Positions 1 through 56,800 of a DNA stretch of 64,000 nucleotides are shown in pieces. The notes below the pieces were generated by a model, which saw nothing but the letters and a program-made list of their open reading frames with translations, ran no database searches and was not told the origin of the DNA. Origin of the DNA: Dicyema japonicum. Its lineage: Eukaryota; Animalia; Dicyemida. A program made the position numbers and the translations under genes. The stretch lies in assembly GCA_011109175.1 (NCBI GenBank), contig RDEW01000053.1, forward strand, positions 124,001 to 188,000, given 5' to 3'. Numbering within the stretch: position 1 is the first letter of the stretch; each line of letters begins with the position of its first letter.

Positions 1-40
1 ACATTTGTTTAATTGTTAAAAAATTATTTTGTTTAAAAAA

Positions 41-248
41 ATTAAGTGTATCCAGTTTCCACTTGTAGAAAAACAGAGTCCATCTGGAATCAACATAAAA
101 GGTAATACGTCCATTACATGCAGTTGTGAAAACCCCTCCAGTGGAGGGGAGAGCAAATGATCCTTTTTCGTGCCGGCCTGGCACTGGGCGCAACCTAGAC
201 AGGTGGATCACATGACGTCACTCTAATAGGAAGAGGAAAAGGAACAGA
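41..248. repeat. Dispersed repeat family A (about 200 bp, ends in GGATCACATGACGTCACTC), unclassified, possibly Penelope-like-derived
   Basis: Closely matches 10768-10975 with the same left boundary (ATTAAGTGTATCCAGTTTCCACTT) and right end. More diverged copies at 14105, 24870 and 31950. Confidence 0.8.
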
Positions 249-332
249 CGTTAAGAAAATGAAAATTTATGAGAAATTTAAATTAATTAAAATTACTAAT
301 CATTATAAAGATAGGAATTAATTTATTGATTC

Positions 333-421
333 AGAGAGAAGGGCTGGCACATTGAGCGCATCTCCTTACAGATCGTAAAAGGAAATGCGCTCTCATCCTG
401 AGAGCAGCCAGTAGCCTTTAA
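333..421 (+). mobile_element. 3' tip of a CRE-like RLE retrotransposon
   Basis: Translates EKGWHIERISLQIVKGNAL, matching the C-terminus ERRWLFERISLAILRGNSH of the long element at 52188. Confidence 0.6.
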
Positions 422-596
422 CTATTTGGTTCTATTCTTCAATAAATTGTTATTTAATTTTTAAAAAAAATTTTATTGATTTATTTTTCATTAAAAAAAT
501 ATTGATTTCTAACGGCTTTAACGCCGTCTATAACGGCTCGTATTCAACCGGTCACATTTATTAAATAAAATTTATTGCAGAACACTACACTCAATT

Positions 597-1490
597 ATGT
601 TCAAATGTATTGATGAAACAAATGTCGACCTATATACTTCCTCGGAATGGTTATCCAAGGGAAATAACGGCCCACGGAGCGAAGCATTGTACTGTCTTCT
701 GCAAGATAGGAATTTGTTTTTTCGCACACACGGGTCGATTTGCAACCATTGTAAAAAAAGCAAGAAAACTGTTTATCATTTGTTCACTTTGTCTGGTAAA
801 ATCGTAAACAGTGATCATCTCCGAAGACATAATGAAATGGTAAAGTGCATCCATCTTCATCATTGTCGAATTTATGGAATCAAAAGAAGCAGGAAATTGA
901 AAGGACATTCGCATCAGTCAATATTGACGAATCAAAATGTCGAAATTAGATTTGACACGTCGATTATGACAGAGAATATAGCACGATACAATAAACCTGA
1001 TATTTTTGTATGACAAAATAAAGAAGAAATAACCTTAATTGAAGTGGGCATTACCTCACAAGACCGACTAAAGCAAGTTGAAGTTGAGAAACTTAACAAA
1101 TATGACTTGCTTGCAAATGAACTTTCGCTGCTCTATGAATGCCAAGTGAAGATTTTTCCAGTGGTTTTGACATGGGATGGAGTTGTCACAAGATGCTTCA
1201 AGAATCATATGGATAAATTATCTATTGAAGAATCAACGAGGACTTACATCCCATCGGTTGTTCTGAAGAGATCACTCGAAAGTATGCTCATTGAACATAA
1301 GCATGGGATGAAGGTATACGATGAAGAGTACGCCTCTGCTACCTCCCAACTTGTGGAACTGGCATACCGTGAGGACAGCCCACTTGACTCAACGAAGATA
1401 TTTCGACTGAATCTGATGTGGAGATGGGAAATAACAAGGAGATTATGGCACACTTTTCTAAGAGAAGAAGAGGGATTACCAACAATCTGA
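597..1490 (+). mobile_element. 5'-truncated R4/Dong-like non-LTR retrotransposon: zinc-knuckle region and restriction-like endonuclease, interrupted
   Basis: CNHC...HL...RRHNEMVKCIH knuckle region followed by NKPDIFV...IEVGITS...EVEKLNKYDLLANEL (PD-(D/E)xK motif). A stop/frame break lies at about 1011. Related fragments at 32770 and 46830. Confidence 0.8.
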
Positions 1491-1633
1491 ATCAAAATCC
1501 GCTTAATTAGTTAATTTACTCGTTATAAACAAATATGTAACATTTATAAATTGCGTTTTTAACTCACTAATATTAATTTAATATTTTCAAAAAATAAACA
1601 CAGATTTTAAAATTTAATTTGACTTGTTCCCTT

Positions 1634-3565
1634 ATGGTTGTTGTGCGTAATTATTATCACAAAGATAATTAGAATTCAAACAGAATACGGGATTAAACGA
1701 ATCACCATGGATGGTCACCAGACATTCTCCGACCTATACTCTAAGGTTTCCTCATTCTTATAATTTTCAGGTTGCCAGTACCTTTGAATCTAAAGAAAAG
1801 GAGTGGCAACTTTACTACGACAGGAAGAAAATAGGATTCCTTCCATACTCCTCGGACCAATGTGGTTCTTTAAAGTAATCCTCAATTTATCATACCAGGA
1901 ATGGACAACTGTTTTACATGTACCCAGTAGAGGGAACGAGATTCTCAAAGACTGAAAATAGCATAGCCGAAGATCCGATCGACGTCGCCCTTTGGAATTC
2001 TGATTCCAGGATTTATTTGGGTGGATCCCAGCTTTGCCAACATTCTAGTAACAGCAGGTGCATAAACTGCAACTTTGTTGAGGTAATATTTGCTTAAATC
2101 TCAGCCATACGACGAGGAGTACCTTTCAAAGATTAATCCCTCTATAAAATTTCTCCCATTTCATTCCTACATGCGAAAACTGATCAACCAGTCATGTTTC
2201 TATCAAATTGTAGGTCCAAGGGGACTCCCCTCGTGCTTGATCAGCCAAACTGCCGTGTGGACATGAATTGTGCTTACCACAAGCCATATCCAGCCGGGAT
2301 TTGTTCCCGTTGCCAACCGGGTGCCATAACGCTGATCCGACAACCGTACAGACACGTGGAGTTCGTCTCGTTTGAGAACGACATTATGGTCCAGAGATTT
2401 ATCGAGTTTTGGAGGAAGACGGGCAAGCAGAGGATCGGATACTTATTTGGAAATATGAGCCTATGAAGGACGTCCCCCTGGGAATCATGGCGGTAGTTGT
2501 GGCGATCTATGAGCCTCCTCAGGTAGCAGAAATGCTTATAGAAGGTATCTGAGGTCGATCAAGTCACTCTGAAGGAAGATTCTGACAGTAGAGTGGAGTG
2601 GTTGGCCTCACAGCTCGGATTAGTCCCCGTCGGCTGGATATTCACGGATTTAGTGGTCAAGGATTCCCAAAAGGGGACTGTGAAACATTTCCGCGGAAAC
2701 ACGGTATATTTTGAAGTTCATGCAGAATTCCTACTATCTGAGTTCTCAGGAGTGCATAGTGGCCGCCCATATGCAGAATCGATACCCAAATTCCTGTAGA
2801 TTTGCCAAGGGGGGATATTACGGGTCCAAGTTTGTCACGGTAGTGGCCACAGGTGCTCTTGTAGATAACTAATAGGGGACACAAACAACCAGATCCACTT
2901 GGAGGCCTACCAGACATCAGTACAGTGTATGTCCTTGGTGAAGGAGAAAATGCTGTTGCCGACCATTGGGTGCTCTCAATTGGCTTACGTGAAGGCCTCC
3001 AGTGGTGAACAGTACGTCCCCGACGTCTTTTATACGGTTGGTGATGGTTTGAAGGTAGAAAACGGACCAGTACGGAAATACGGTGAATCAGATAGCACGT
3101 CCTGTGCCGAATGAATTCCTGTTAACAGAATTGGAGGTGGGTACCCCGAAGATCAAGATGTACTCCCTGCCTATTGACCCAGAGAAGCGATTCTTTGCGA
3201 TTGAGAACAGATCTGAGTATTTGGAGACGCAGAATCTTTTATTTTTCGCCAAATATTGGCAGCAGTTTGAGGCTGATTCGTTTCTGGAGTGTATTGGGGA
3301 CTTACACGTGTTGTTATTCCTCGCGAGTCCCGAGTTTGGGTCACTGGAGAACTGTTTCGGGGATCTACTGAGAGCTGTGAGGGAACGGGATAGGTGTTTG
3401 CTGGATAGGATAAGACATGGGATCGATATGCAGTCCCTGATTGAGCTGGTAAGTGCTGCTATTGACTCGGCTCCCCCGGATGGAAGTAAGGCGTGTTCAA
3501 GATGTACATTCATTAATACGGCTGAGAACACACGGTGTGAACTTTGTGGGTTTAACCTATCTTAG
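1634..3565 (+). CDS. NPLOC4: Nuclear protein localization protein 4 homolog (p97/Ufd1 cofactor), 10 exons
   Basis: Spliced product reads MVV-IIRIQTEYGIKRIT...CQHSSNSRCINC...HSYMRKL...GICSRCQPGAITL...FWRKTGKQRIGYLFG...AIYEPPQ...VGWIFTDL...GSKFVTVVATG...QYVPDVFY...CSRCTFINTAENTRCELC (NZF finger). GT-AG introns: 1643-1664, 1746-1770, 1875-1898, 2083-2104, 2191-2213, 2523-2544, 2704-2725, 2853-2875, 3037-3058 (22-25 nt). One A is missing in the run at 2451-2453. Confidence 0.96.
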
Positions 3566-3849: not shown

Positions 3850-4266
3850 ATCCCCCATATGTCTGATCTGCATTATGGCCAAATTTTGGTGCGGAGTCTA
3901 CTGGAGACTATCCCGTATTGTTGAAATGATCGGGTTCCTTGTTATATGCTTTCCGGCAGACGGATCTGGTGGTGGCTGTCTTTCTTCGAAACTGAATTAC
4001 CAGAGAGAGGGAGTTCAAAAGTCACTTGAATGTCGAGTACTTTGTTCTATCAAAAGCATTCGATAAGGCACTTATGCCGTTTATGAGACATAACCCCCGT
4101 TGGAAAAAACATGATTGGTGAAGGACTTGTCAGGAAAAATTTATTAAATATGGAGAATTGTGTCAAAACTGGTGGAACTGAAAAGAAGACACCCTCGGAA
4201 TTCGGTTCTTCAACATCTACATGGCTGATATAACATTCCCGAAGACACTGAGTATGAATATTTTTC
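3850..4266 (+). mobile_element. Decayed Jockey/CR1-like LINE reverse transcriptase fragment
   Basis: Broken frames give LSKAFDK (about 4045-4066) and FFNIYMADI (about 4205-4235), like the RT family at 29100, 48621 and 56340. Confidence 0.45.
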
Positions 4267-4967
4267 TTAATGCTGATGACACTCTAATCTCGCACGTGTT
4301 AAGTCAGTAAATTGCCGTACAAGACACTTGATAATTACATAAGAAATCAGCAATTGATGTGTCTCCAAGGGTTTGACAATTTCACCTGAGCTAACTAACG
4401 CTCTGCAAATCTCTAATTTTAGAAGACTCAGTCGAAGAGGTTTGCTGCGAAGAACATAAAAGATGTGACTAACTTGCACTACCTCGGAGTGCTAATTGGC
4501 TCACAAGTCATGTGAAATGTCTCCGTTCTATCCTGATTTAGGCAGAAGACCTTGTAATTGCGCCAAACTGAATCGAACCCAGAGCACAGTGTATCAATAA
4601 TTCCTCAAACATCGTATATTTGACGTCCCCCGATTCGGACATTACGTGCATTCGCACTGAAAGTAGAACGAGGAGCTACACTATCTTTAGGGGGTGAAGA
4701 CATTCGGACAATGGAGGTAGGTCACCCTTCCGACGTTTCGTAAGTATTAGTTTTGTAAATATCCACGTGACTTACAACTCTGAAAAATTATTTTAAACTA
4801 AAGACTTGAATACTAAAAGAAGTAATGAGAGTATGTTGACTTTCCAACTATGGAAACTGCGGGAGTAACTATGACTCTCAAAACAGGTTCAGCATAACAA
4901 TGTGGATACTTGCTTCATGCTTGCGCTAACATAGTTCATATCACCGAGGGACAACAGAGACGTCGAA

Positions 4968-5175
4968 TGCGTGTCCATCCAAAATGGCCTCCAATTATTT
5001 TTGTCAAGTTTTAGATAAGCTCATCAAAAAACATCACGAGATTTTACCAAAACGACATCCTTAGGTAAAAAAGTCATTTATTTTTAATCTTATAAAAATT
5101 GATTTTAATAAGTACTATGGGTAAATGGAGCGTAACAAGATCCTCGACATCTTTAGGTAAAAAAGTCATCTTTTA
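4968..5175. repeat. Dispersed repeat family B with an internal 92-95 bp tandem subrepeat (likely a DNA-transposon end)
   Basis: TGCGTGTCCATCCAAAATGGCCTCCAATT... and twice ATC(C/T)TTAGGTAAAAAAGTCAT. Homologous to 63430-63720. Confidence 0.8.
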
Positions 5176-5919
5176 TAATATTTCTATTTTTGTCTAACTT
5201 TAGAATGAAAGATTTATTTTAAACAGGAAAAAGGAAAATGATTATAAATGTTAATAAAATACATATTCTATTAAAAAATATATATTCTGTCGATCCATAT
5301 TAAGTAACATTTACAAATCTCAATATATTCTCAAATAAAGCGATATATTTAGTTTTTCTAAGAATCATTTCTCCATTTTGTAATCTTAAAAATTATATCA
5401 TTCACTTAAAAAAGTTAGCTAATCAGAGTTTGAGCTTTCAATGGATTTTTGTTCGGAAATTTTTCCAAGTATAATCTTCATTGATACTGAGTGAAAGTTT
5501 TATGGACGTCAACGGAGAAGTACAATCTTCATGTAACCGTTAAACGGCTTTAACGGTTAAATCGATTTTGCGTTTCATTCCCAGCCTAACCTCATTTAAA
5601 ACCAGTCACAATTATTATGAATGTTAGATTAGTAATAGTTAGAGAAGTAATCTAATTAAAAGCCTAAATTATGATTGGCATATTGTACCGGGAAAAGAAG
5701 AAAGGAGTAAATCCAGAGATTGGCTCCATTTGACTCATAAGCAGCGGTTTTGCCTTCAGTGTCGGGGACATCATTATTGACATTGACTAATTTAAAACAA
5801 TTCTTTACTCGACTCAAGGCAACCCCATTTTTTCTCCAATGAAGACACAGTATCGATCATTTTTTTAGACACGTGTCTCGAAATTAAGAATATTATTACA
5901 CATGTTTATAGTCATACGG

Positions 5920-6920
5920 ATTCATTAAACAATTTTTATTACAATTACTTGCAGTATTTGCGACATGCTTAAACCCAAGCACGTGGAATAACTCATGAGA
6001 TATAGTCGATGCATCGTCTTCATCAGATTTTCTATGAAGCATAATTGCCACTGATTGATGTGTACAAACAGTTCCAACATAAGCGATTCCCGATTTCCTG
6101 TTTCCTGATTTAGATCTGACAATAGTGTCTCTGATGATTAGTTTGAATAATTACTCAAAGAACAAAACTACGTCTCCATCATGAAAATATTTTTTATTCC
6201 ATGCGTACATAGCGGCATTGTGAGGATCAGTTGACAAAATATCGTCAGTGAAGTATATTTTTTTAAGATTTAGTTGTATTTTGAGTGTTCCAAAATACTG
6301 AATTATGATAAATACATACTTTTTGAGACAACTCGAACAATCTTTCAATGTAAACTTTAATGCGGATTCTATCAGTGTTTAAACTTTTTTGCTATGTGTA
6401 AAATATTAAAACTAACAAATATTTTATCAACAACACTGACGACATCAAATCTTCTGTTTAAGTGTCTGTTATCTAAAATTGTTTAAAACTAAATCACCGA
6501 CGAAAGCACAAAATAAAGTGTAAAGTAAAAAATTCATTTTTTAAATTGCAAAAATCGTTTGAAAAATTCATTTATAAGCTAAAATTACTCAGTAATTATT
6601 TTTGAAGCATGTAATTTGACTTTGGGGAATTTAGTTTATTCTAAATTTTTGATTAATTCTACTTTTTTGTTTACTCTACAGATTTTTAATACGGTGTTAT
6701 CAGTTAGCATATTAAAGGTCAGTCACATTTTAGTGGGCCTATCCCAAATTGTCTCGTTTTTGAAGAATTTTATATTTTTTAAAAGTTTTGTTTAGCGCCA
6801 TAGTCGCTGGACGACTCGTCACTGATTTCTGATTCATCGCTTCCATCGCAAAAGTGATTTGATTCGTCAAGAATATCAGTTAACTCTTGCTCAGGATAAA
6901 TTTCTTAAAAACAACATATC
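5920..6920 (-). mobile_element. Possible piggyBac-like transposase remnant
   Basis: An acidic N-terminal stretch (ELTDILDESNHFCDGSDESEISDE) and YFTDDIL...MYA resemble piggyBac N-termini. Heavily decayed. Confidence 0.3.
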
Positions 6921-7959
6921 ACTGACGCTTATCAGGTTAAAGGTTTTTTGAAATTTATTAAAAATAAAAAACTGATTATTTAAATGAAAACTTTCATTAT
7001 AGAATAGAACTGTCCAGATTAACTAATTTCCCACATTTCACTGCTTCCACCCCTGCGATGATTTTGTTCAGCTCTGTTATTATCCTCTTGCAATCTAGAT
7101 GCTAAAGAGGATTCGCAAGATGTGCGTCAAGTGACATACCTCTTTTTTTCTTAGCACAGTTTAAATACATCCATTTCCAGCTTTCTCAAATACCACTGTG
7201 CAATTATGTAATGATACAATATTATGTCATCACATAAGGAATAACACTACATTGCAACGATGTAGCTTCCGTAGGTAGGGTATCGATTAATAATGCTGTT
7301 GCGGGGCCATCATAGAGTTTTAGTTAAAGTTAGTTCAGTAAGTGATGCATTTCCTCAGATAGCATAACAAAATAATTCCTTAATCCTGACATGTTCGAGT
7401 TGGATTCTCATCTAGACTAAATAAATAAACTCATCATTTCCACTTGAAACTACTGTAGAGACTGTGGTAGACTTGATTTAATACGCTTGATAGATATAGT
7501 AGGTCTTAAAAATAAATCAAAGACAGCCACTCATTTTTAGCAGAATGTATCAGTTTTTAAAAAGGATGTTAGCATTCCGACCAATTAAACTAAAGGTTAA
7601 TTAGTAAAACCGCATGCGAAATTCTATTTTTTTGTTTTTTAATCGTTTTTTACCTCTGACAAAAGATTGGTATGGAAGAGAGTCATTTTGGACTTAAACC
7701 ATGTCAACATCCCACTGAAAGTAATAGCGCATTATAAAAATGCATTGCGCAATATATTGTGTCGCGTCACATGGTGGTTACGTGTCCCATGCTGGTTACA
7801 CATCACCTGTCAATCACTTTCAGATGTCATCTTAATGTGGTTTTAATCATAAAAACGATAATAGTCAATAAACAACGACATTTCGTCAATTAATATCGAC
7901 ACGTGGTCAGAAAATAAATTTTTACAACAATACTAGTTAAACACAAAAAATATTCATTC

Positions 7960-50419: not shown

Positions 50420-51870
50420 ATATTAATTTAATAAATTAAATAAATTTTTTTGATTTTTTTCTTTGTGGGCGTCGGAGATTGTTAAAAAAGGTTTGAATAA
50501 CCGTACGGTGACCCCATTATAGACGCGTCTAGCGGACACGAACTCGTTTAAGTATTTATTGTCGACCTTCAGGCTTAACAAAATTATTGAGTTGCAAATT
50601 AACCACGTGCTTTGAAATTTTGTGCGAACTTTTTGAGATAATGTCGTTTTCTTGGATTTGACCGTCATTATAACTCAACCTATGAAAGTCATTTTTGAGC
50701 TCTTCTTACTCGAAGAACTGTTCCAGGGACTTATTCGATCCTAAAATGTCATTTTGAGACAGCGAAAATAGACTTGGGGGACCAGTCTTTATGCTAAAAT
50801 TTATTCAATCTGAACTAAAACAAAAAATATTTTTTAAAAGTAAAATATTATTCTGATGCATATTTTTTACACCAAATCTTAGCCTTGCTGTCGATTTCAA
50901 CACCTTTCAAGTCATCCTTAGTAATTTTGTACAATTTGTGTCTTCTCCGATTGAACGCTTTACTTGGTTCCCTATAATGTAGTAGCCGTTCCCAAAGATG
51001 CCAATATAGTCCTGATTTGTACCATAGAAGACATATTCGGTCATGTTCTTTGTCCCCACATATTTGATCCACTCTTTGGTGACATTCGTGTCAAACTTGA
51101 ATTTCTTGTTTATCCCAAAAGTCTGGGATCTGATTTGGAACATTTCACAGTTCCGTCTCAGTTTGTAAGAGTAGATTTTGAGAAAGACAGCCGAAGAAAA
51201 CGTCATCAACGACAAGCCTACGCTTAGACGTAAAATATACTGATTAGAAAAATAAGAATAGCGAAGTGACCCGATCTCGGATTTTTGGGGGACTTGAGGA
51301 TTTTCATTATTTGATTTTCTATGCATTTTTTGTATTTATTCTGAGCAGTCACCTCATTTTTACCGACGGTGGTGATGTTCATGATCTCCTGTAAACTTCC
51401 TTTGATCTTTTCGGTGGAGAGATCCCAGTCTGAAGGTTAAATCGTAAAGAGACCTCGGGAATAAATGTCGCTTTTTATGGAAAAAATATCCTGTGAAGGT
51501 TTCGATCGCAGATTCAACTGGAATCAATTTAAATTTTACATTGGCTAAAGTCAGAGATCTCTTCTTCGATGTCTTCGTTTTGGGAAGTAATGTTTTCTGA
51601 CTTTATTCCGACGAATCCTGCTGTGTTGTCTCTTAGCTGAAAATCCATAGGACTGTGAACCTGATTATATTTGTCGACGATGGCTTCGTAGACACGGCCC
51701 AATCCACTTTTGACGTTTTTCGTCAAAACTTCAATTATTGAGGATTTCACAGATGTTGGTGCTAGGCTCTCTTCTGTTTTGTAGGAATTCGACGAATCCT
51801 TCGTTCTGCCTTTGCGAAACTCTCTGCTGTACCCGATCCGACCCAACTCTCTTTACTGGAACCCATGAAT
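50420..51870 (-). CDS. One or more hypothetical spliced genes (no family recognised)
   Basis: Open frames of 105, 139 and 81 aa, separated by 22-24 nt GT-AG segments (e.g. GTAAAATTTAAATTGATTCCAG and GTCTCTTTACGATTTAACCTTCAG). I could not resolve a unique exon path. Confidence 0.4.
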
Positions 51871-52149
51871 TATGTTCATTTTACGAAAGATTGATAATTT
51901 AGCATTAAACTGACGGAATTTACCTTATATCCAAAAATGGAAAGAATTCGCAAAATTTCAATATTTGACTAAATAGGAAAATTAGTGTAGACTATCATAC
52001 AGACTATCGTATGTCTTAATTCTGACAGATGATCGTATGAGTTACTTCAATTTGTCAGGACAGGATCCGATCCCGAGTCCTTCGTGTATCAGAGACTTCT
52101 TTTACAGAACAGTGTTTCTCAATCTTTTTTTGTATCTCCCATATTTTTT

Positions 52150-55038
52150 TTAAAATAAATTTTATTTTAAATTTTAAACAATAGAAGTCAGGTAGTTGCC
52201 GCCCTCACCGCGTGGCTGTTCCCTCTCAAAATTGCGAGCGAAATTCGCTCAAATAGCCAGCGGCGTTCGCGGAGATCTCCAGTGCATGAGGTGATCCGGT
52301 TTCCAAGACGTCCGAAAAACTCGAGTGTAGAGGGGGAGTAGGATCCGGAAGTCTCCATAGCAAGGGGAACAAATTTGACATCATCGGGAAGGTCGACGTA
52401 TTTAACGAGTTTGGCCTTCTCCGCCTTTACGGATGCTGAACAGGCCCTTGTAGCACTCTCGTGAAGATTTTTCTGGGCGAACGTGTCTGTACATGTCACA
52501 TCCCAAACCAGTGGTTTCCCGGCCTCAAATGGAAATATGGTCATCCCGTCCGGTCGTTTCCCGTCACTTCTGCATAACCCGACCGGTTCAAGAATGGCCG
52601 AGTATCCAGCAGCATCCATAGCTCGCCTGACAATTTCATTCAGAGCCTTGTGCCTTGGGATCTGCCAGCGCTCCTCCTGCAGGCGAGAGGGTGCAGGCCA
52701 TAGCAGTCTATCAGGATGCCACATCGGCACGGGTGAGGTACACATACTTTTAGTCCCAGCCGCAGAGAGATACCAGTTCTAACGCATTCATCATCCAGAA
52801 AAGTGCCCAAAGCTCCATTGGGGATGGCGTTTAGCCAAGCTCCGCTCTCAGGGGAAGCCCCCGAAAGCAAACAAGCGCGTCGGTGCTGATTGGCAGATTC
52901 CAGTAGGAGTCCAAATGATTTCCAGCATAATAAGTTGTCCAGGTTTCGCTGGCGATCTTGGGAAGGAGGCAGGGGGAGGTTGGTGGCATTCCAGGCTTCT
53001 CGTGCGTGGATTATCTCTTGGTCAGTTGAGAATTCGGGTGGGGAGTGTAGAATCCTCCTGACCAAAGGTTCGCAGGCCGTGAGTGATGATAAATGAGCGG
53101 GAAGTGAGACGTCCAAAGTTCGACGGATTCCAAGACCCCCGAATCTAACTGGGAGTGTAGCCTGCATCCATGTATCATCGTCGAATCGGACATTAAATAT
53201 TTGCTCCGTCGAGCTGAGGAGAGACAAATCAAAATTCTCGAGCAGCTCCAGTTGAGAATAATGGAGCTGTCCTTAGTAGATAGGAGATTCTCTGGATGTT
53301 GAGACTTCTTTTCAATAGGAATAGTGCTGTGTGCAAGTCCAGCAGCTGTAATCTTTCCAGCGAATCGCATATGAGTCGTTTTTTGTCAAGGAGGACATGC
53401 TTCATCTCATTACTAGTGATCGGGGATCCAAGAAAAATCAATTCATTTTCAGGGGTCGAAATCCCACCGGGATACAAGGAGTAAAATTTTTGAACAATTG
53501 AAGAGAAGTCATCGTCAGCAAGACCACAGTTTGTTATTTCACATTTCGTTATATTCAACTGAAGACCCACCTCGGACAGCGCGGGGGTGAGTACTTCTAA
53601 GTCCTGGAAGACCGTTTACGGGGGACCTCCTAAGACAGCGTCATCGAGGTACCAGATGTTGAGTGGGCATCTGTTCTGCCTGTGGAGTCTTCTTTCACCT
53701 CGGGTGTTTGAAGCTCTCTCAGGCCTCTATCCGTGCTCTTGGGGTATGGCACTGCCGCTCGTGCCTTGGAATTGGTTCGGGGTTTCCTAATGGTCACGCG
53801 AGTGCATGTACCTCCGGGGCAAGACCTTTCCCATTTGGATCCAGATTCGCTGCTCAAAATTATCAATGAACGCCGGTCATCGAGGAGTATCCCGGTGAAG
53901 ATCCCTAAAGCAGCCCGCCCCCTAGCTGCCGAAGCCTTAACCAAAGCAATCGACGATGCACTCCGCTCCGACTCTATAAACGACTGGATACGTTTGTTTA
54001 ATTTTGCTCCTTTCGCTCTTGGCTCCTCTAGAGATCGCAATGGGAAGGAGTCTCTCTCGATTGAGATGAAGAACAACATCCGCGCATTTATGGATGGAAC
54101 TCACTTTACGGACCTCACGTCCTTCTGCATCCGTTCAACTGAGACTCGGAGTTCAACTCGGGAAACGGAGATTCTTCGCCTAAGAAGACCGTACGATCGA
54201 AGTTGCTTGAAGGAGGAACCCGATCCGCATTGAAGGCCCTCTCACTCTCAGATGGACCACGCAATCCAACCATTGATACTTACAAGACGCTATTGGGGAA
54301 ACATCCACCCTCTCCGAATGACCTACGCCATTGCTCGCCCCCATCAGAAGCGACCCTTTGACCACGTCGCCTGAGGATGTCATCACGGCGTTATGGAACT
54401 TTGCACCAAGTAGCTGTGGAGGTCTCGATGGCTTAAGGCCGGCCATCTTAAAGACCTTATTTCACCGACTATTGGAGACCAAGCAAGTCGTCTTTCATAC
54501 TCACTCACTTCTCTTATGAACAGGATATTATCTGGACATTTGCCTGATTTGATACGTCATATCTTGTTTTCGGCTAGTCTGATTGCCGTCGACAAGAAGG
54601 GAGGTGGAATCCGCCCGATCGCGGTCGGATTCACTTTCAGAAGACTAGCAGCCAAGATTGCTTCCAGATTTTCTACGTCAATCTTGTCAAAATCCTTACT
54701 TCCCAGTCAAGTTGGAGTCGGAGTTCGTCTTGGATGTGAGGCAGCCGTTCACTCCGTCAGAAGATTCAGGAACAGCAGCATTCAAGACTTTAAAAGGCAC
54801 ATTATGGTAAAACTGGACATCAAGAACGCTTTTAACAGCTTAAGAAGAGACTGCATTCTGGAGGCCTGCAAGGAAAGATGTCCGTACATATTTGAACTGG
54901 TCAATTATTCATACGGAAAACCTTCATCACTATTGCACGGGGATTTCATAGTTCCATCGTCCTCAGGTGTTCAACAGGGCGACCCCCTCGGATCACTGCT
55001 GTTCTCCCTCGGCATTGAGAGGATCACGAAGCTCTCTA
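52150..55038. mobile_element. Near-complete CRE-clade RLE retrotransposon with an inverted 5' half (3' half on minus 53667 to 52150; 5' half on plus 53663-55038)
   Basis: Plus strand: PHD-like finger, then RT N-terminal motifs RPIAVGFTFRRLAAK, GCEAAVH, LDIKNAFNS, VQQGDPLGSLLF. Minus strand: LNIWYLDD, GLQLNITKC, QATLPVRFGGLG, SGAWLNAIP, CRCG...HPLAC, RPDGMT...WDVTCTDT, ETSG, RISLAILRGN, stop, A-rich tail. Confidence 0.95.
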
Positions 55039-55042
55039 GATA

Positions 55043-55800
55043 TTAAAAAAAATTATTCACTGAACATTCTCCCTGTGACCGGCACAGGAACCTCATAGAT
55101 GGAATTAGCTTACGAAACCACTTAAGGCAGCTAAAAACTAACAACCTGCACTTCTTAGGATTGATTTTGAGACCTCTACTGTCAAAGCAGAGTATGGTCA
55201 CCCCCTCCCTCACACAGCTTCTTGGATCATAACACAAAAGATCTTTTCTTCACTAATGATCCTAAAGTACGATGTCATCAGCATAGACACCCATTCTAGT
55301 TCTCCAATTGGCTGAGCAAGGAAGCGATGACAAGAAGATATTGAATAAGGTGTCACTCAGGATCGACCCCTGTCGTATTCTTTCGTTAGAGACTAACAAA
55401 TTGGATCGGCAACCTTTATGTTGCGCCTAATTCATTCGACCTTCTACAAATTTAGAGATCCAGCTTATCAGTTCGACGGAGATTCCCGCTTTTCCTGGTT
55501 TCCTTACAACAACCAATTCCGCCTCCTCCAAACGCCTGGCAACATATCTCAACCTGAGGTTACCGTTAAACATCCTTATCAGGAAGTCCACAAAGCTATG
55601 TGGTGCCTTATTGAAGAGGGCCATAGGTATCCGGTCAGACCCAGGGGCATTAATTTTGGATTTTCAAATTGTCCCAAGGAATCTGGAAAACAAAGCTGGA
55701 ACTCAATAATTCCTTATCACCCGATAGTCAGTGCTTGCATCACTATTCACCACAGGGGAGGCAAACTCAGTCTCTTCTGTAGTACCTTTTGGTGGAGAGG
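55043..55800 (-). mobile_element. Decayed non-LTR RT fragment from a different family
   Basis: EAELVVVRKPGK, VYADD (about 55275-55290 on minus) and GLKINPKKC. Confidence 0.6.
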
Positions 55801-56339
55801 CACTTGAATTAGCTAGCCTATGTCCCTTACCACGATTCACACATTTGAGATCATCCACCGTCTTGAATCCCAATAAAGTTGGGGTTCTCCTCGTTTAAAT
55901 ACTCTGAAGTTGCCAAAACAGCTGATGTACTTAAGGTACAAAGTAGTTTGAGACTTGCTTCAGTTAGTCCGTAAAATACCTAAAAAATTCAGTCATCCGA
56001 GACACATCTTTCTGACATCGAAAATTGCAATGAAACGAGGGAGGAATAAGATTGGATGGAAGAAACTAGTAAAAAGGATAGTAGGGAGTACAACACAAAC
56101 GAAATGTATATTTTCATTGTTAATACCGGTGATTGATATCCTAGTAAATTTTCCACCACCGAATGCACAGATTCATGGTTCCCCCAATTTAACTTACCTT
56201 CTCAGATCAAACACTGTTTCTTTCGTTTTTAAAGCATTCGGAGGGGGCAATAAAGCCAGACAGATGGATCACGTGATGCCAGTCTATTAGAGCGTGAAAA
56301 GATGAGGAACAGAAGAAGAGAAATCTGAAGGAACCGAAC

Positions 56340-56800
56340 CCATAGAGTAATTGATTTGCCATAATATTCGCAAGGCAGTGTGTGCGACGAGGCCTTATTG
56401 ATTCAGGTACGGCTAGTTAGTACACTGAATGATTGGGTCAAGCCGTTCTTTTGAGGAAGAAAGTCGTTTGTTAACCAAAGACTTCATATCTCTGGAAAAA
56501 TTGTTTTAAAGAGAGGTGTCACTCAATTCGTCCTGAAAACGGGCTTTTATTGCGGGACTTTCTACAGCCAAGATACAGCAATGCACAATTACTTATGCTG
56601 ACCACGTTCCCTCGTGGGATGCGGAGATTTTCTCTGAGAGGAGAGAAAATTATCTTGAGGAGTTTGTTCTCTGATGGGGATGCGAGACGAAATTAAATGA
56701 GTACCAGGAAAATATTATTGAGCCAATGGGGGTTGACTATGGATGAGAGAATAGCGGCCATCCGTATGAAAGGATCTGCGTATGTCGACGAATACTACCG
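56340..56800 (+). mobile_element. Decayed Jockey/CR1-like RT fragment
   Basis: KRGVTQ and TYADH in broken frames. Same family as 48621. Confidence 0.5.

Follow-up and report, generated by a model that had tools for sequence, protein, structure and literature searches.

A probable twin-priming-like 5′ inversion in an RLE-type LINE of Dicyema japonicum

We analysed one stretch of Dicyema japonicum DNA of 64,000 nt, called the window here (contig RDEW01000053.1, positions 124,001 to 188,000). In one LINE copy in the window, the 5′ segment is flipped with respect to the 3′ segment of the same element, which bears the tail. This copy is probably a twin-priming-like insertion made by a LINE of the RLE type. 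Twin priming is the accepted explanation of the frequent 5′ inversions in human L1. For human L1, both twin priming and 5′ inversion are credited to Ostertag and Kazazian 2001 where PMC4245944 and PMC6895275 cite that work.

We compared the window copy with L031, a natural unbroken copy of the family (contig C314, 3119 bp), rather than with a built consensus; positions in this reference are given below as ref. By BLAST, window 53672–55041 on the plus strand corresponds to ref 238–1609 with 99.6% identity, and window 52161–53672 on the minus strand corresponds to ref 1606–3119 with 99.1% identity. The flipped 5′ segment (53672–55041, plus strand) takes in a truncated PHD finger along with the N-terminal region and the RT motifs as far as QQGDPLG; its translation runs from the truncated finger (CSACGVFFHLGC...) to the RT motif ...QQGDPLGSLLFSLGIERITKLS and ends at 55041. 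The tail-bearing 3′ segment (52173–53672, minus strand, from ref 1606 to the conserved 3′ end) contains the YLDD motif of the RT together with thumb and linker, CCHC knuckle and restriction-like endonuclease. Its translation, which is broken by frameshifts and one in-frame stop, leads from CPLNIWYLDD through the CCHC knuckle (C-x-C...H...C) to the RPD...D.T endonuclease motif and on to the A/T-rich tail. Comparison with other copies places this variable tail, which ends in an A-run (a T-run on the plus strand), at 52146–52172 on the minus strand. The preliminary description had seen the two halves of one ORF pointing away from a junction at about 53663–53670, with a plus half from a truncated PHD-like finger to about 55037 and a minus half from (C)PLNIWYLDD to the endonuclease and an A-rich tail. 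The translations agree on each point, with the junction slightly further right, at 53672, and the end of the plus half at 55041. One half of the window copy has 2 mismatches to its nearest relatives and the other has 5–8; the two halves are equally young.

The two segments meet at 53672, where alignment to L031 and to colinear copies shows ref 1606 joined to ref 238. A single T at this position is common to both segments, and the junction has no filler. We fetched 8 colinear copies for comparison, and all 8 read ...CTCTAGATGCCCACT... across the uninterrupted breakpoint. In the window copy, the flipped 5′ part closes with ...CTCTAGAT at 55041, and the 3′ part opens with AGATGCCC, the reverse complement of 53665–53672. 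The letters AGAT (ref 1606–1609) are thus present at both breakpoints, the outer occurrence lying at 55038–55041 on the plus strand. The outer end of the inverted half had been described as continuous with the 3′ half with almost no loss; measured against L031, the two parts overlap by 4 bp and nothing is missing.

A direct repeat flanks the whole copy. ATATT had been pointed out at 52141 and at 55040, and both occurrences are there to be read directly, as candidate target-site duplications (TSDs). The left copy (52141–52145) adjoins the T-run as which the A-rich tail appears on the plus strand, and behind the right copy (55040–55044) lies an A8 run belonging to the target. The repeat is 5 bp only and lies in AT-rich DNA beside homopolymer runs; we estimate its chance occurrence at about 1%, a sliding boundary being allowed for. 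The last AT of the outer AGAT also belongs to the right TSD copy, which gives 2 nt of possible microhomology between primer and RNA.

A search of the window's own genome (67,542,437 bases, 377 contigs) returned 1080 first-look candidates, about 40 of which were scored as copies. These are 96–100% identical, and both halves are colinear in nearly all of them. Homology among the colinear copies reaches about 237 bp farther 5′ than in the window copy. The full element is therefore about 3.1 kb long, of which the window copy is missing about 237 bp at the 5′ end. The element has a single ORF for a PHD finger, RT, CCHC and restriction-like endonuclease, which in L031 comprises about 1000 codons with one frameshift. 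Other full-length copies read A-run, CGT, GTTGTC at the 5′ end. At the other end, the conserved sequence closes with ...CTATTGTTTAAA and is followed by an A/T-rich stretch and an A-run that are different in every copy. The family is dispersed, and its copies have unrelated flanks and different TSDs.

At least three more copies among the roughly 40 scored (C168, C322 and C312) have the geometry of the window copy. In all three, the tail-bearing piece is inverted and sits on the 5′ side of a 3′-truncated body. C168 combines a tail piece of ref 2426–3115 with a body of ref 1–2488 (overlap 63 bp; TSD CTAAGTT plus GATGA shared with the element). In C322, the tail piece is ref 2770–3115 and the body ref 165–2860 (overlap 91 bp; TSD TGATGTT plus GGA shared with the element), and in C312 they are ref 2969–3107 and ref 1–3057 (overlap 89 bp; TSD TGTAATAATT plus AG shared with the element). 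The direct TSDs of these copies are 10–12 bp long when the microhomology is counted in, and the microhomology at the internal priming site is 2–5 nt. Colinear copies have TSDs of 7–14 bp; the inverted copies therefore fit the family's normal integration. Each of the three has one tail, its own breakpoints, flanks unrelated to those of the others and zero N at the junctions. Next to the tail, the left TSD copy of each of these three closes with TT. At the inversion junction of C312, 3–4 nt (ACGT) are common to both cDNA ends. The twin-priming geometry proposed for the window copy is thus strengthened by three further copies with clear direct TSDs and microhomology.

ATATT in the window matches the clearer TSDs of C168, C322 and C312 in position and orientation. 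What looked like filler at the C168 and C312 junctions belongs to the 5′ end of the family itself. C246 and C38 also seemed to be rearranged, but we discarded both as assembly artefacts at N gaps. A junction-shaped query of the genome returned nothing beyond the C312 and C322 copies already found.

All breakpoints differ among the inverted copies, which excludes both the spread of one rearranged variant and a family built with terminal inverted repeats; the four are independent events. The inverted tail piece of C312 is short (139 bp) and does resemble a terminal inverted repeat. Even so, a variant of that kind, or two independent insertions placed head to head, is scarcely credible. The flipped part carries neither a 3′ end nor a tail, and since this holds for the plus half in the window, the two halves there cannot come from separate insertions. 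Moreover, the arm breakpoints are complementary in 4 of 4 copies while differing between copies (1606, 2426–2488, 2770–2860 and 2969–3057).

The inverted arrangement might also have arisen in the assembly, if a piece of a collapsed, 99%-identical repeat had been misoriented in scaffolding or gap closing. The Dicyema japonicum assembly (67.5 Mb, 377 scaffolds, 49% repeats) was made from Illumina and mate-pair libraries with PacBio scaffolding and gap closing (PMC6736024). The use of short reads and gap closing favours this explanation, as do the artefacts at N gaps in C246 and C38. However, the whole window contains zero N. Its right junction joins an internal position of the element, in forward orientation, to unique flank, which an assembler cannot invent, and the other arm begins at a matching coordinate (1606, against 1609 at this junction). 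The same logic, with long TSDs, is seen at three other loci. An assembly artefact is therefore very unlikely.

Outside the element, the right flank holds an old remnant of an unrelated LINE RT (55068–55675, minus strand) with about 50% amino-acid identity to the RT ORFs of other copies. The element was inserted into or beside this remnant. Protein-level tracing of the remnant across the insertion site (51000–52140 and 55045–56000) gave only insignificant matches in the left flank. A paralogous locus, C322:321919–323351, matches window 50920–51751, 55356–55491 and 56379–56440 in one orientation and order; it is not conserved within about 300–400 bp of the insertion point. Both flanks are colinear at this locus and not inverted relative to each other, so that, on this coarse scale, no larger genomic inversion, which the preliminary description had named as a refutation, is involved. 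Neither a second allele of either flank nor an empty or orthologous site was found in the assembly; with a reported heterozygosity of 1.24%, an empty allele may exist. Five sequencing runs of one organism, from two studies, hold 30–79% of the sampled words of the stretch.

A smaller inversion could have followed a normal 5′-truncated insertion, either through two breaks and rejoining or through recombination. Inversions do occur, and a staggered break could give the 4-bp duplication. Such a history would nevertheless need one break exactly at the boundary between element and flank, and would need it in four independent copies. The TSDs are still direct and outermost, and the breakpoints have no inverted repeats. 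We consider a later inversion highly improbable and retain a twin-priming-like insertion as the reading of the window copy.

Which type of LINE made the insertion can be judged from its protein. In Pfam, L031 matches a PHD finger and RVT_1 (E 4.6e-11), and the APE-type domain (Exo_endo_phos) was not found. The C-terminal 484 aa have homologues, unnamed proteins, in many animals, including Octopus, barnacle, Lepidoptera and tardigrade. In an alignment of 26 homologues, C305, C307, H317, C321, D365 and D381 show no variation, and at least 90% keep K362 and P364. An AlphaFold model of these 484 aa, made on an intact piece homologous to the window 3′ segment, has a pLDDT of 91, and R2 retrotransposon proteins are the only PDB entries whose fold it matches strongly (for 8gh6_A, E 2.9e-10 in Foldseek and a TM by query of 0.54). 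A sequence search of the C-terminal half against the PDB returned zero matches, R2 chains included. The invariant CCHC and RPD...D.T residues, together with the predicted R2-like fold, therefore support assignment of the element to the RLE-type (R2-group) LINEs as defined in PMC3636483. The RLE nature of the element, already recognised in the preliminary description, gains support from the same residues and fold.

The inversion would be silent on RLE chemistry if twin priming had occurred in trans, the machinery of an APE-type LINE from this genome having copied the polyadenylated RNA of the RLE element. The A-run tail of the element is compatible with such a transfer, and 6 of 8 first-strand primers end in TT, as in L1. 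Against this, hundreds of family pieces with 98–99% identity (662–1080 first-look candidates) and one near-intact ORF with a single frameshift fit autonomous mobilisation in cis, and, in contrast to a strict TTTT/AA site, the nick is followed by varying bases (A, G, C, T). We therefore regard mobilisation in trans as unlikely and return to twin priming by the RLE-type element itself.

The geometry, overlaps, flanking repeats, microhomologies and recurrence in three other copies are seen in the sequences themselves; we infer which nick came first, that priming took place on RNA, and that the RLE protein of the element itself was the actor. The window copy would stem from one retrotransposition event, in which an RLE-type LINE with a single ORF, a poly(A) tail and no site specificity was inserted. 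The target before insertion would have read ...CCCATATTAAAAAAAATT..., with ATATT present once. The first nick would fall at ...ATATT^AAAAAAAA, and the freed 3′ end would prime on the RNA tail. The first cDNA would then run from ref 3119 back to 1606 and give the 3′ segment. Before its completion, the opposite strand would be nicked about 5 nt away, and the second 3′ end would anneal to the RNA near ref ~1608 over about 2 nt (2–5 nt across the inverted copies). The second cDNA would run from ref 1609 back to 238 and give the flipped part. Both cDNA ends would finally be joined at 53672 with 1 nt of microhomology (0–4 nt across the inverted copies). Such a series of steps would leave a flipped 5′ part, a 4-bp breakpoint overlap, a single tail and a direct TSD. 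A point against this scheme is that the longer overlaps of C168, C322 and C312 (63–91 bp) need strand displacement or two RNA templates. The chances are about even that the RLE-type LINE of this genome twin-primes in roughly 1 in 10 of its insertions.

For RLE-type LINEs, the one paper we found to discuss twin priming treats it as an L1 phenomenon that might be related to second-strand synthesis, and its R2 in-vitro model places second-strand cleavage after first-strand synthesis (PMC6895275). In the comparative study PMC4245944, L1 in human cells accounted for all 5′ inversions but one, a Nimb-2_DR insert, and ZfL2-1 gave none; an overhang of about 5 nt was argued to be too short for second priming, and 5′ inversions were concluded to hinge on properties particular to L1 and to the host. 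PMC2718515 does no more than cite the original twin-priming paper. A report of twin priming in an RLE-type LINE was not found in our search of papers outside the subscription journals.

If the proposed mechanism is true, the second-strand nick can be made and can prime on RNA before first-strand synthesis ends. Neither the ordered R2 model nor the view of 5′ inversion as a peculiarity of L1 and human cells would agree with this. The overlaps of 60–90 nt would further suggest that two RT active sites work simultaneously, either with strand displacement on a single RNA or on two RNAs. With four clean and independent inversions, this young RLE family would show that early second-strand nicking and priming on RNA extend beyond the APE-type elements. 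Such natural footprints (TSD length, microhomology and overlap length) would set limits on how the second half of LINE integration can proceed, a poorly understood step that also matters for R2-based gene insertion tools.

The element shares features with three known systems. Like R2 (R2Bm and R2Tg; PDB 8gh6 and 9nl3), it has a single ORF in which the RT is followed by thumb and linker, then a CCHC knuckle and a PD-(D/E)XK-type endonuclease, and the R2 fold matches its C-terminal 484 aa. The N-terminus of R2 carries zinc-finger/Myb domains, whereas a PHD finger is all that Pfam found at the N-terminus of the element. R2 inserts in 28S rDNA; the sites of the element are dispersed, with an A-run tail and TSDs, and its flanks show no insertion in 28S rDNA. 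With the CRE clade (CRE1/2, SLACS, CZAR and the MoTeR relatives), to which the preliminary description had assigned it, it shares the R2-group architecture and insertions with TSDs, which are stated for CRE and R4 (PMC3636483). Classical CRE elements insert into spliced-leader genes, in contrast to the dispersed window family, whose unrelated flanks and differing TSDs show no such site specificity. Searches of Pfam, Atlas and papers found neither a clade label for the element nor a link between the PHD finger and the CRE, NeSL or HERO clades.

The comparison with human L1 concerns the insertion itself. In L1 twin priming, as in the inverted copies of the window family, a flipped 5′ part is joined to a tail-bearing 3′ part with a small overlap or gap; there is one poly(A) tail, a direct TSD (in the window copy a candidate) surrounds the whole, and the joints show microhomology. 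L1 has an APE-type endonuclease and TSDs of about 15 bp, whereas the window family has a C-terminal restriction-like endonuclease and TSDs of 5–14 bp. The inverted fraction of the family, about 4 of 40 copies, is of the order seen for L1.

The breakpoint of the partly inverted window copy, at position 1606 of the reference copy L031, lies near the ends of two plain 5'-truncated copies of the RLE family: L018 (G000:C328:149784-154290) ends at reference position 1598 and L016 (G000:C315:190987-195476) at 1624. This proximity to position 1606 may mark a reverse transcriptase pause site, or it may be due to chance. At the 5' end of the family (element positions 1-120 in the oriented copies L031-L036), we found a short tandem repeat whose copy number varies; reference positions 1-118 align a second time, starting from position 66. 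An A-run plus CGT precedes this 5' end in several full-length copies, and in L034 7 additional nucleotides separate the target-site duplication from the 5' end of the element.

Some copies have flanks in common: L034 and L021, L009 and L018, and, in their upstream regions, L034 and L038. The shared 3' flanks are identical, and the upstream sequences of L034 and L038 share 93% identity across 3.1 kb. Thus, part of the copy number of the family is supplied by segmental duplication rather than by new insertion. A remnant of another LINE reverse transcriptase family lies in the right flank of the window copy (55068-55675, minus strand, about 50% amino-acid identity). Copies of this second family repeat at ~7.2-kb intervals on G000:C343 (145500-176763), a spacing that suggests a tandem array.

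We also considered copies of the RLE family that are incomplete or look rearranged. L037 (G000:C13:1349300-1358000) matches reference positions 246-2939 at its positions 4910-7601 and thus stops 180 bp short of the reference 3' end and has no tail; within 1 kb around it, no part of the element lies in inverted orientation. The missing 3' end may be due to a deletion or to a later insertion. Two further copies, L056 (G000:C246:719000-727000, at 4151-4250) and L055 (G000:C38:1-8000, at 4126 and 5417-7358), look rearranged: one contains a 115-bp direct duplication, and the 3' end of the other is chimeric. Because these oddities are positioned exactly at N gaps, we rejected them as biological rearrangements and consider them assembly artefacts.

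The best named homologues of the C-terminal half of the element are Octopus sinensis proteins (P0003, P0006, P0009, and others), which would come from the host group if the genome is that of a dicyemid. At 44-50% identity, this protein comparison shows no indication of a recent transfer.

Separately, contig C334 carries a pair of 3' ends of the RLE family (G000:C334:1716680-1716980, minus strand, and 1717082-1717236, plus strand) that are directed away from each other, with ~100 bp between them. Since they point outward, the tail side is present on each, and the arrangement of this pair differs from that of twin priming.
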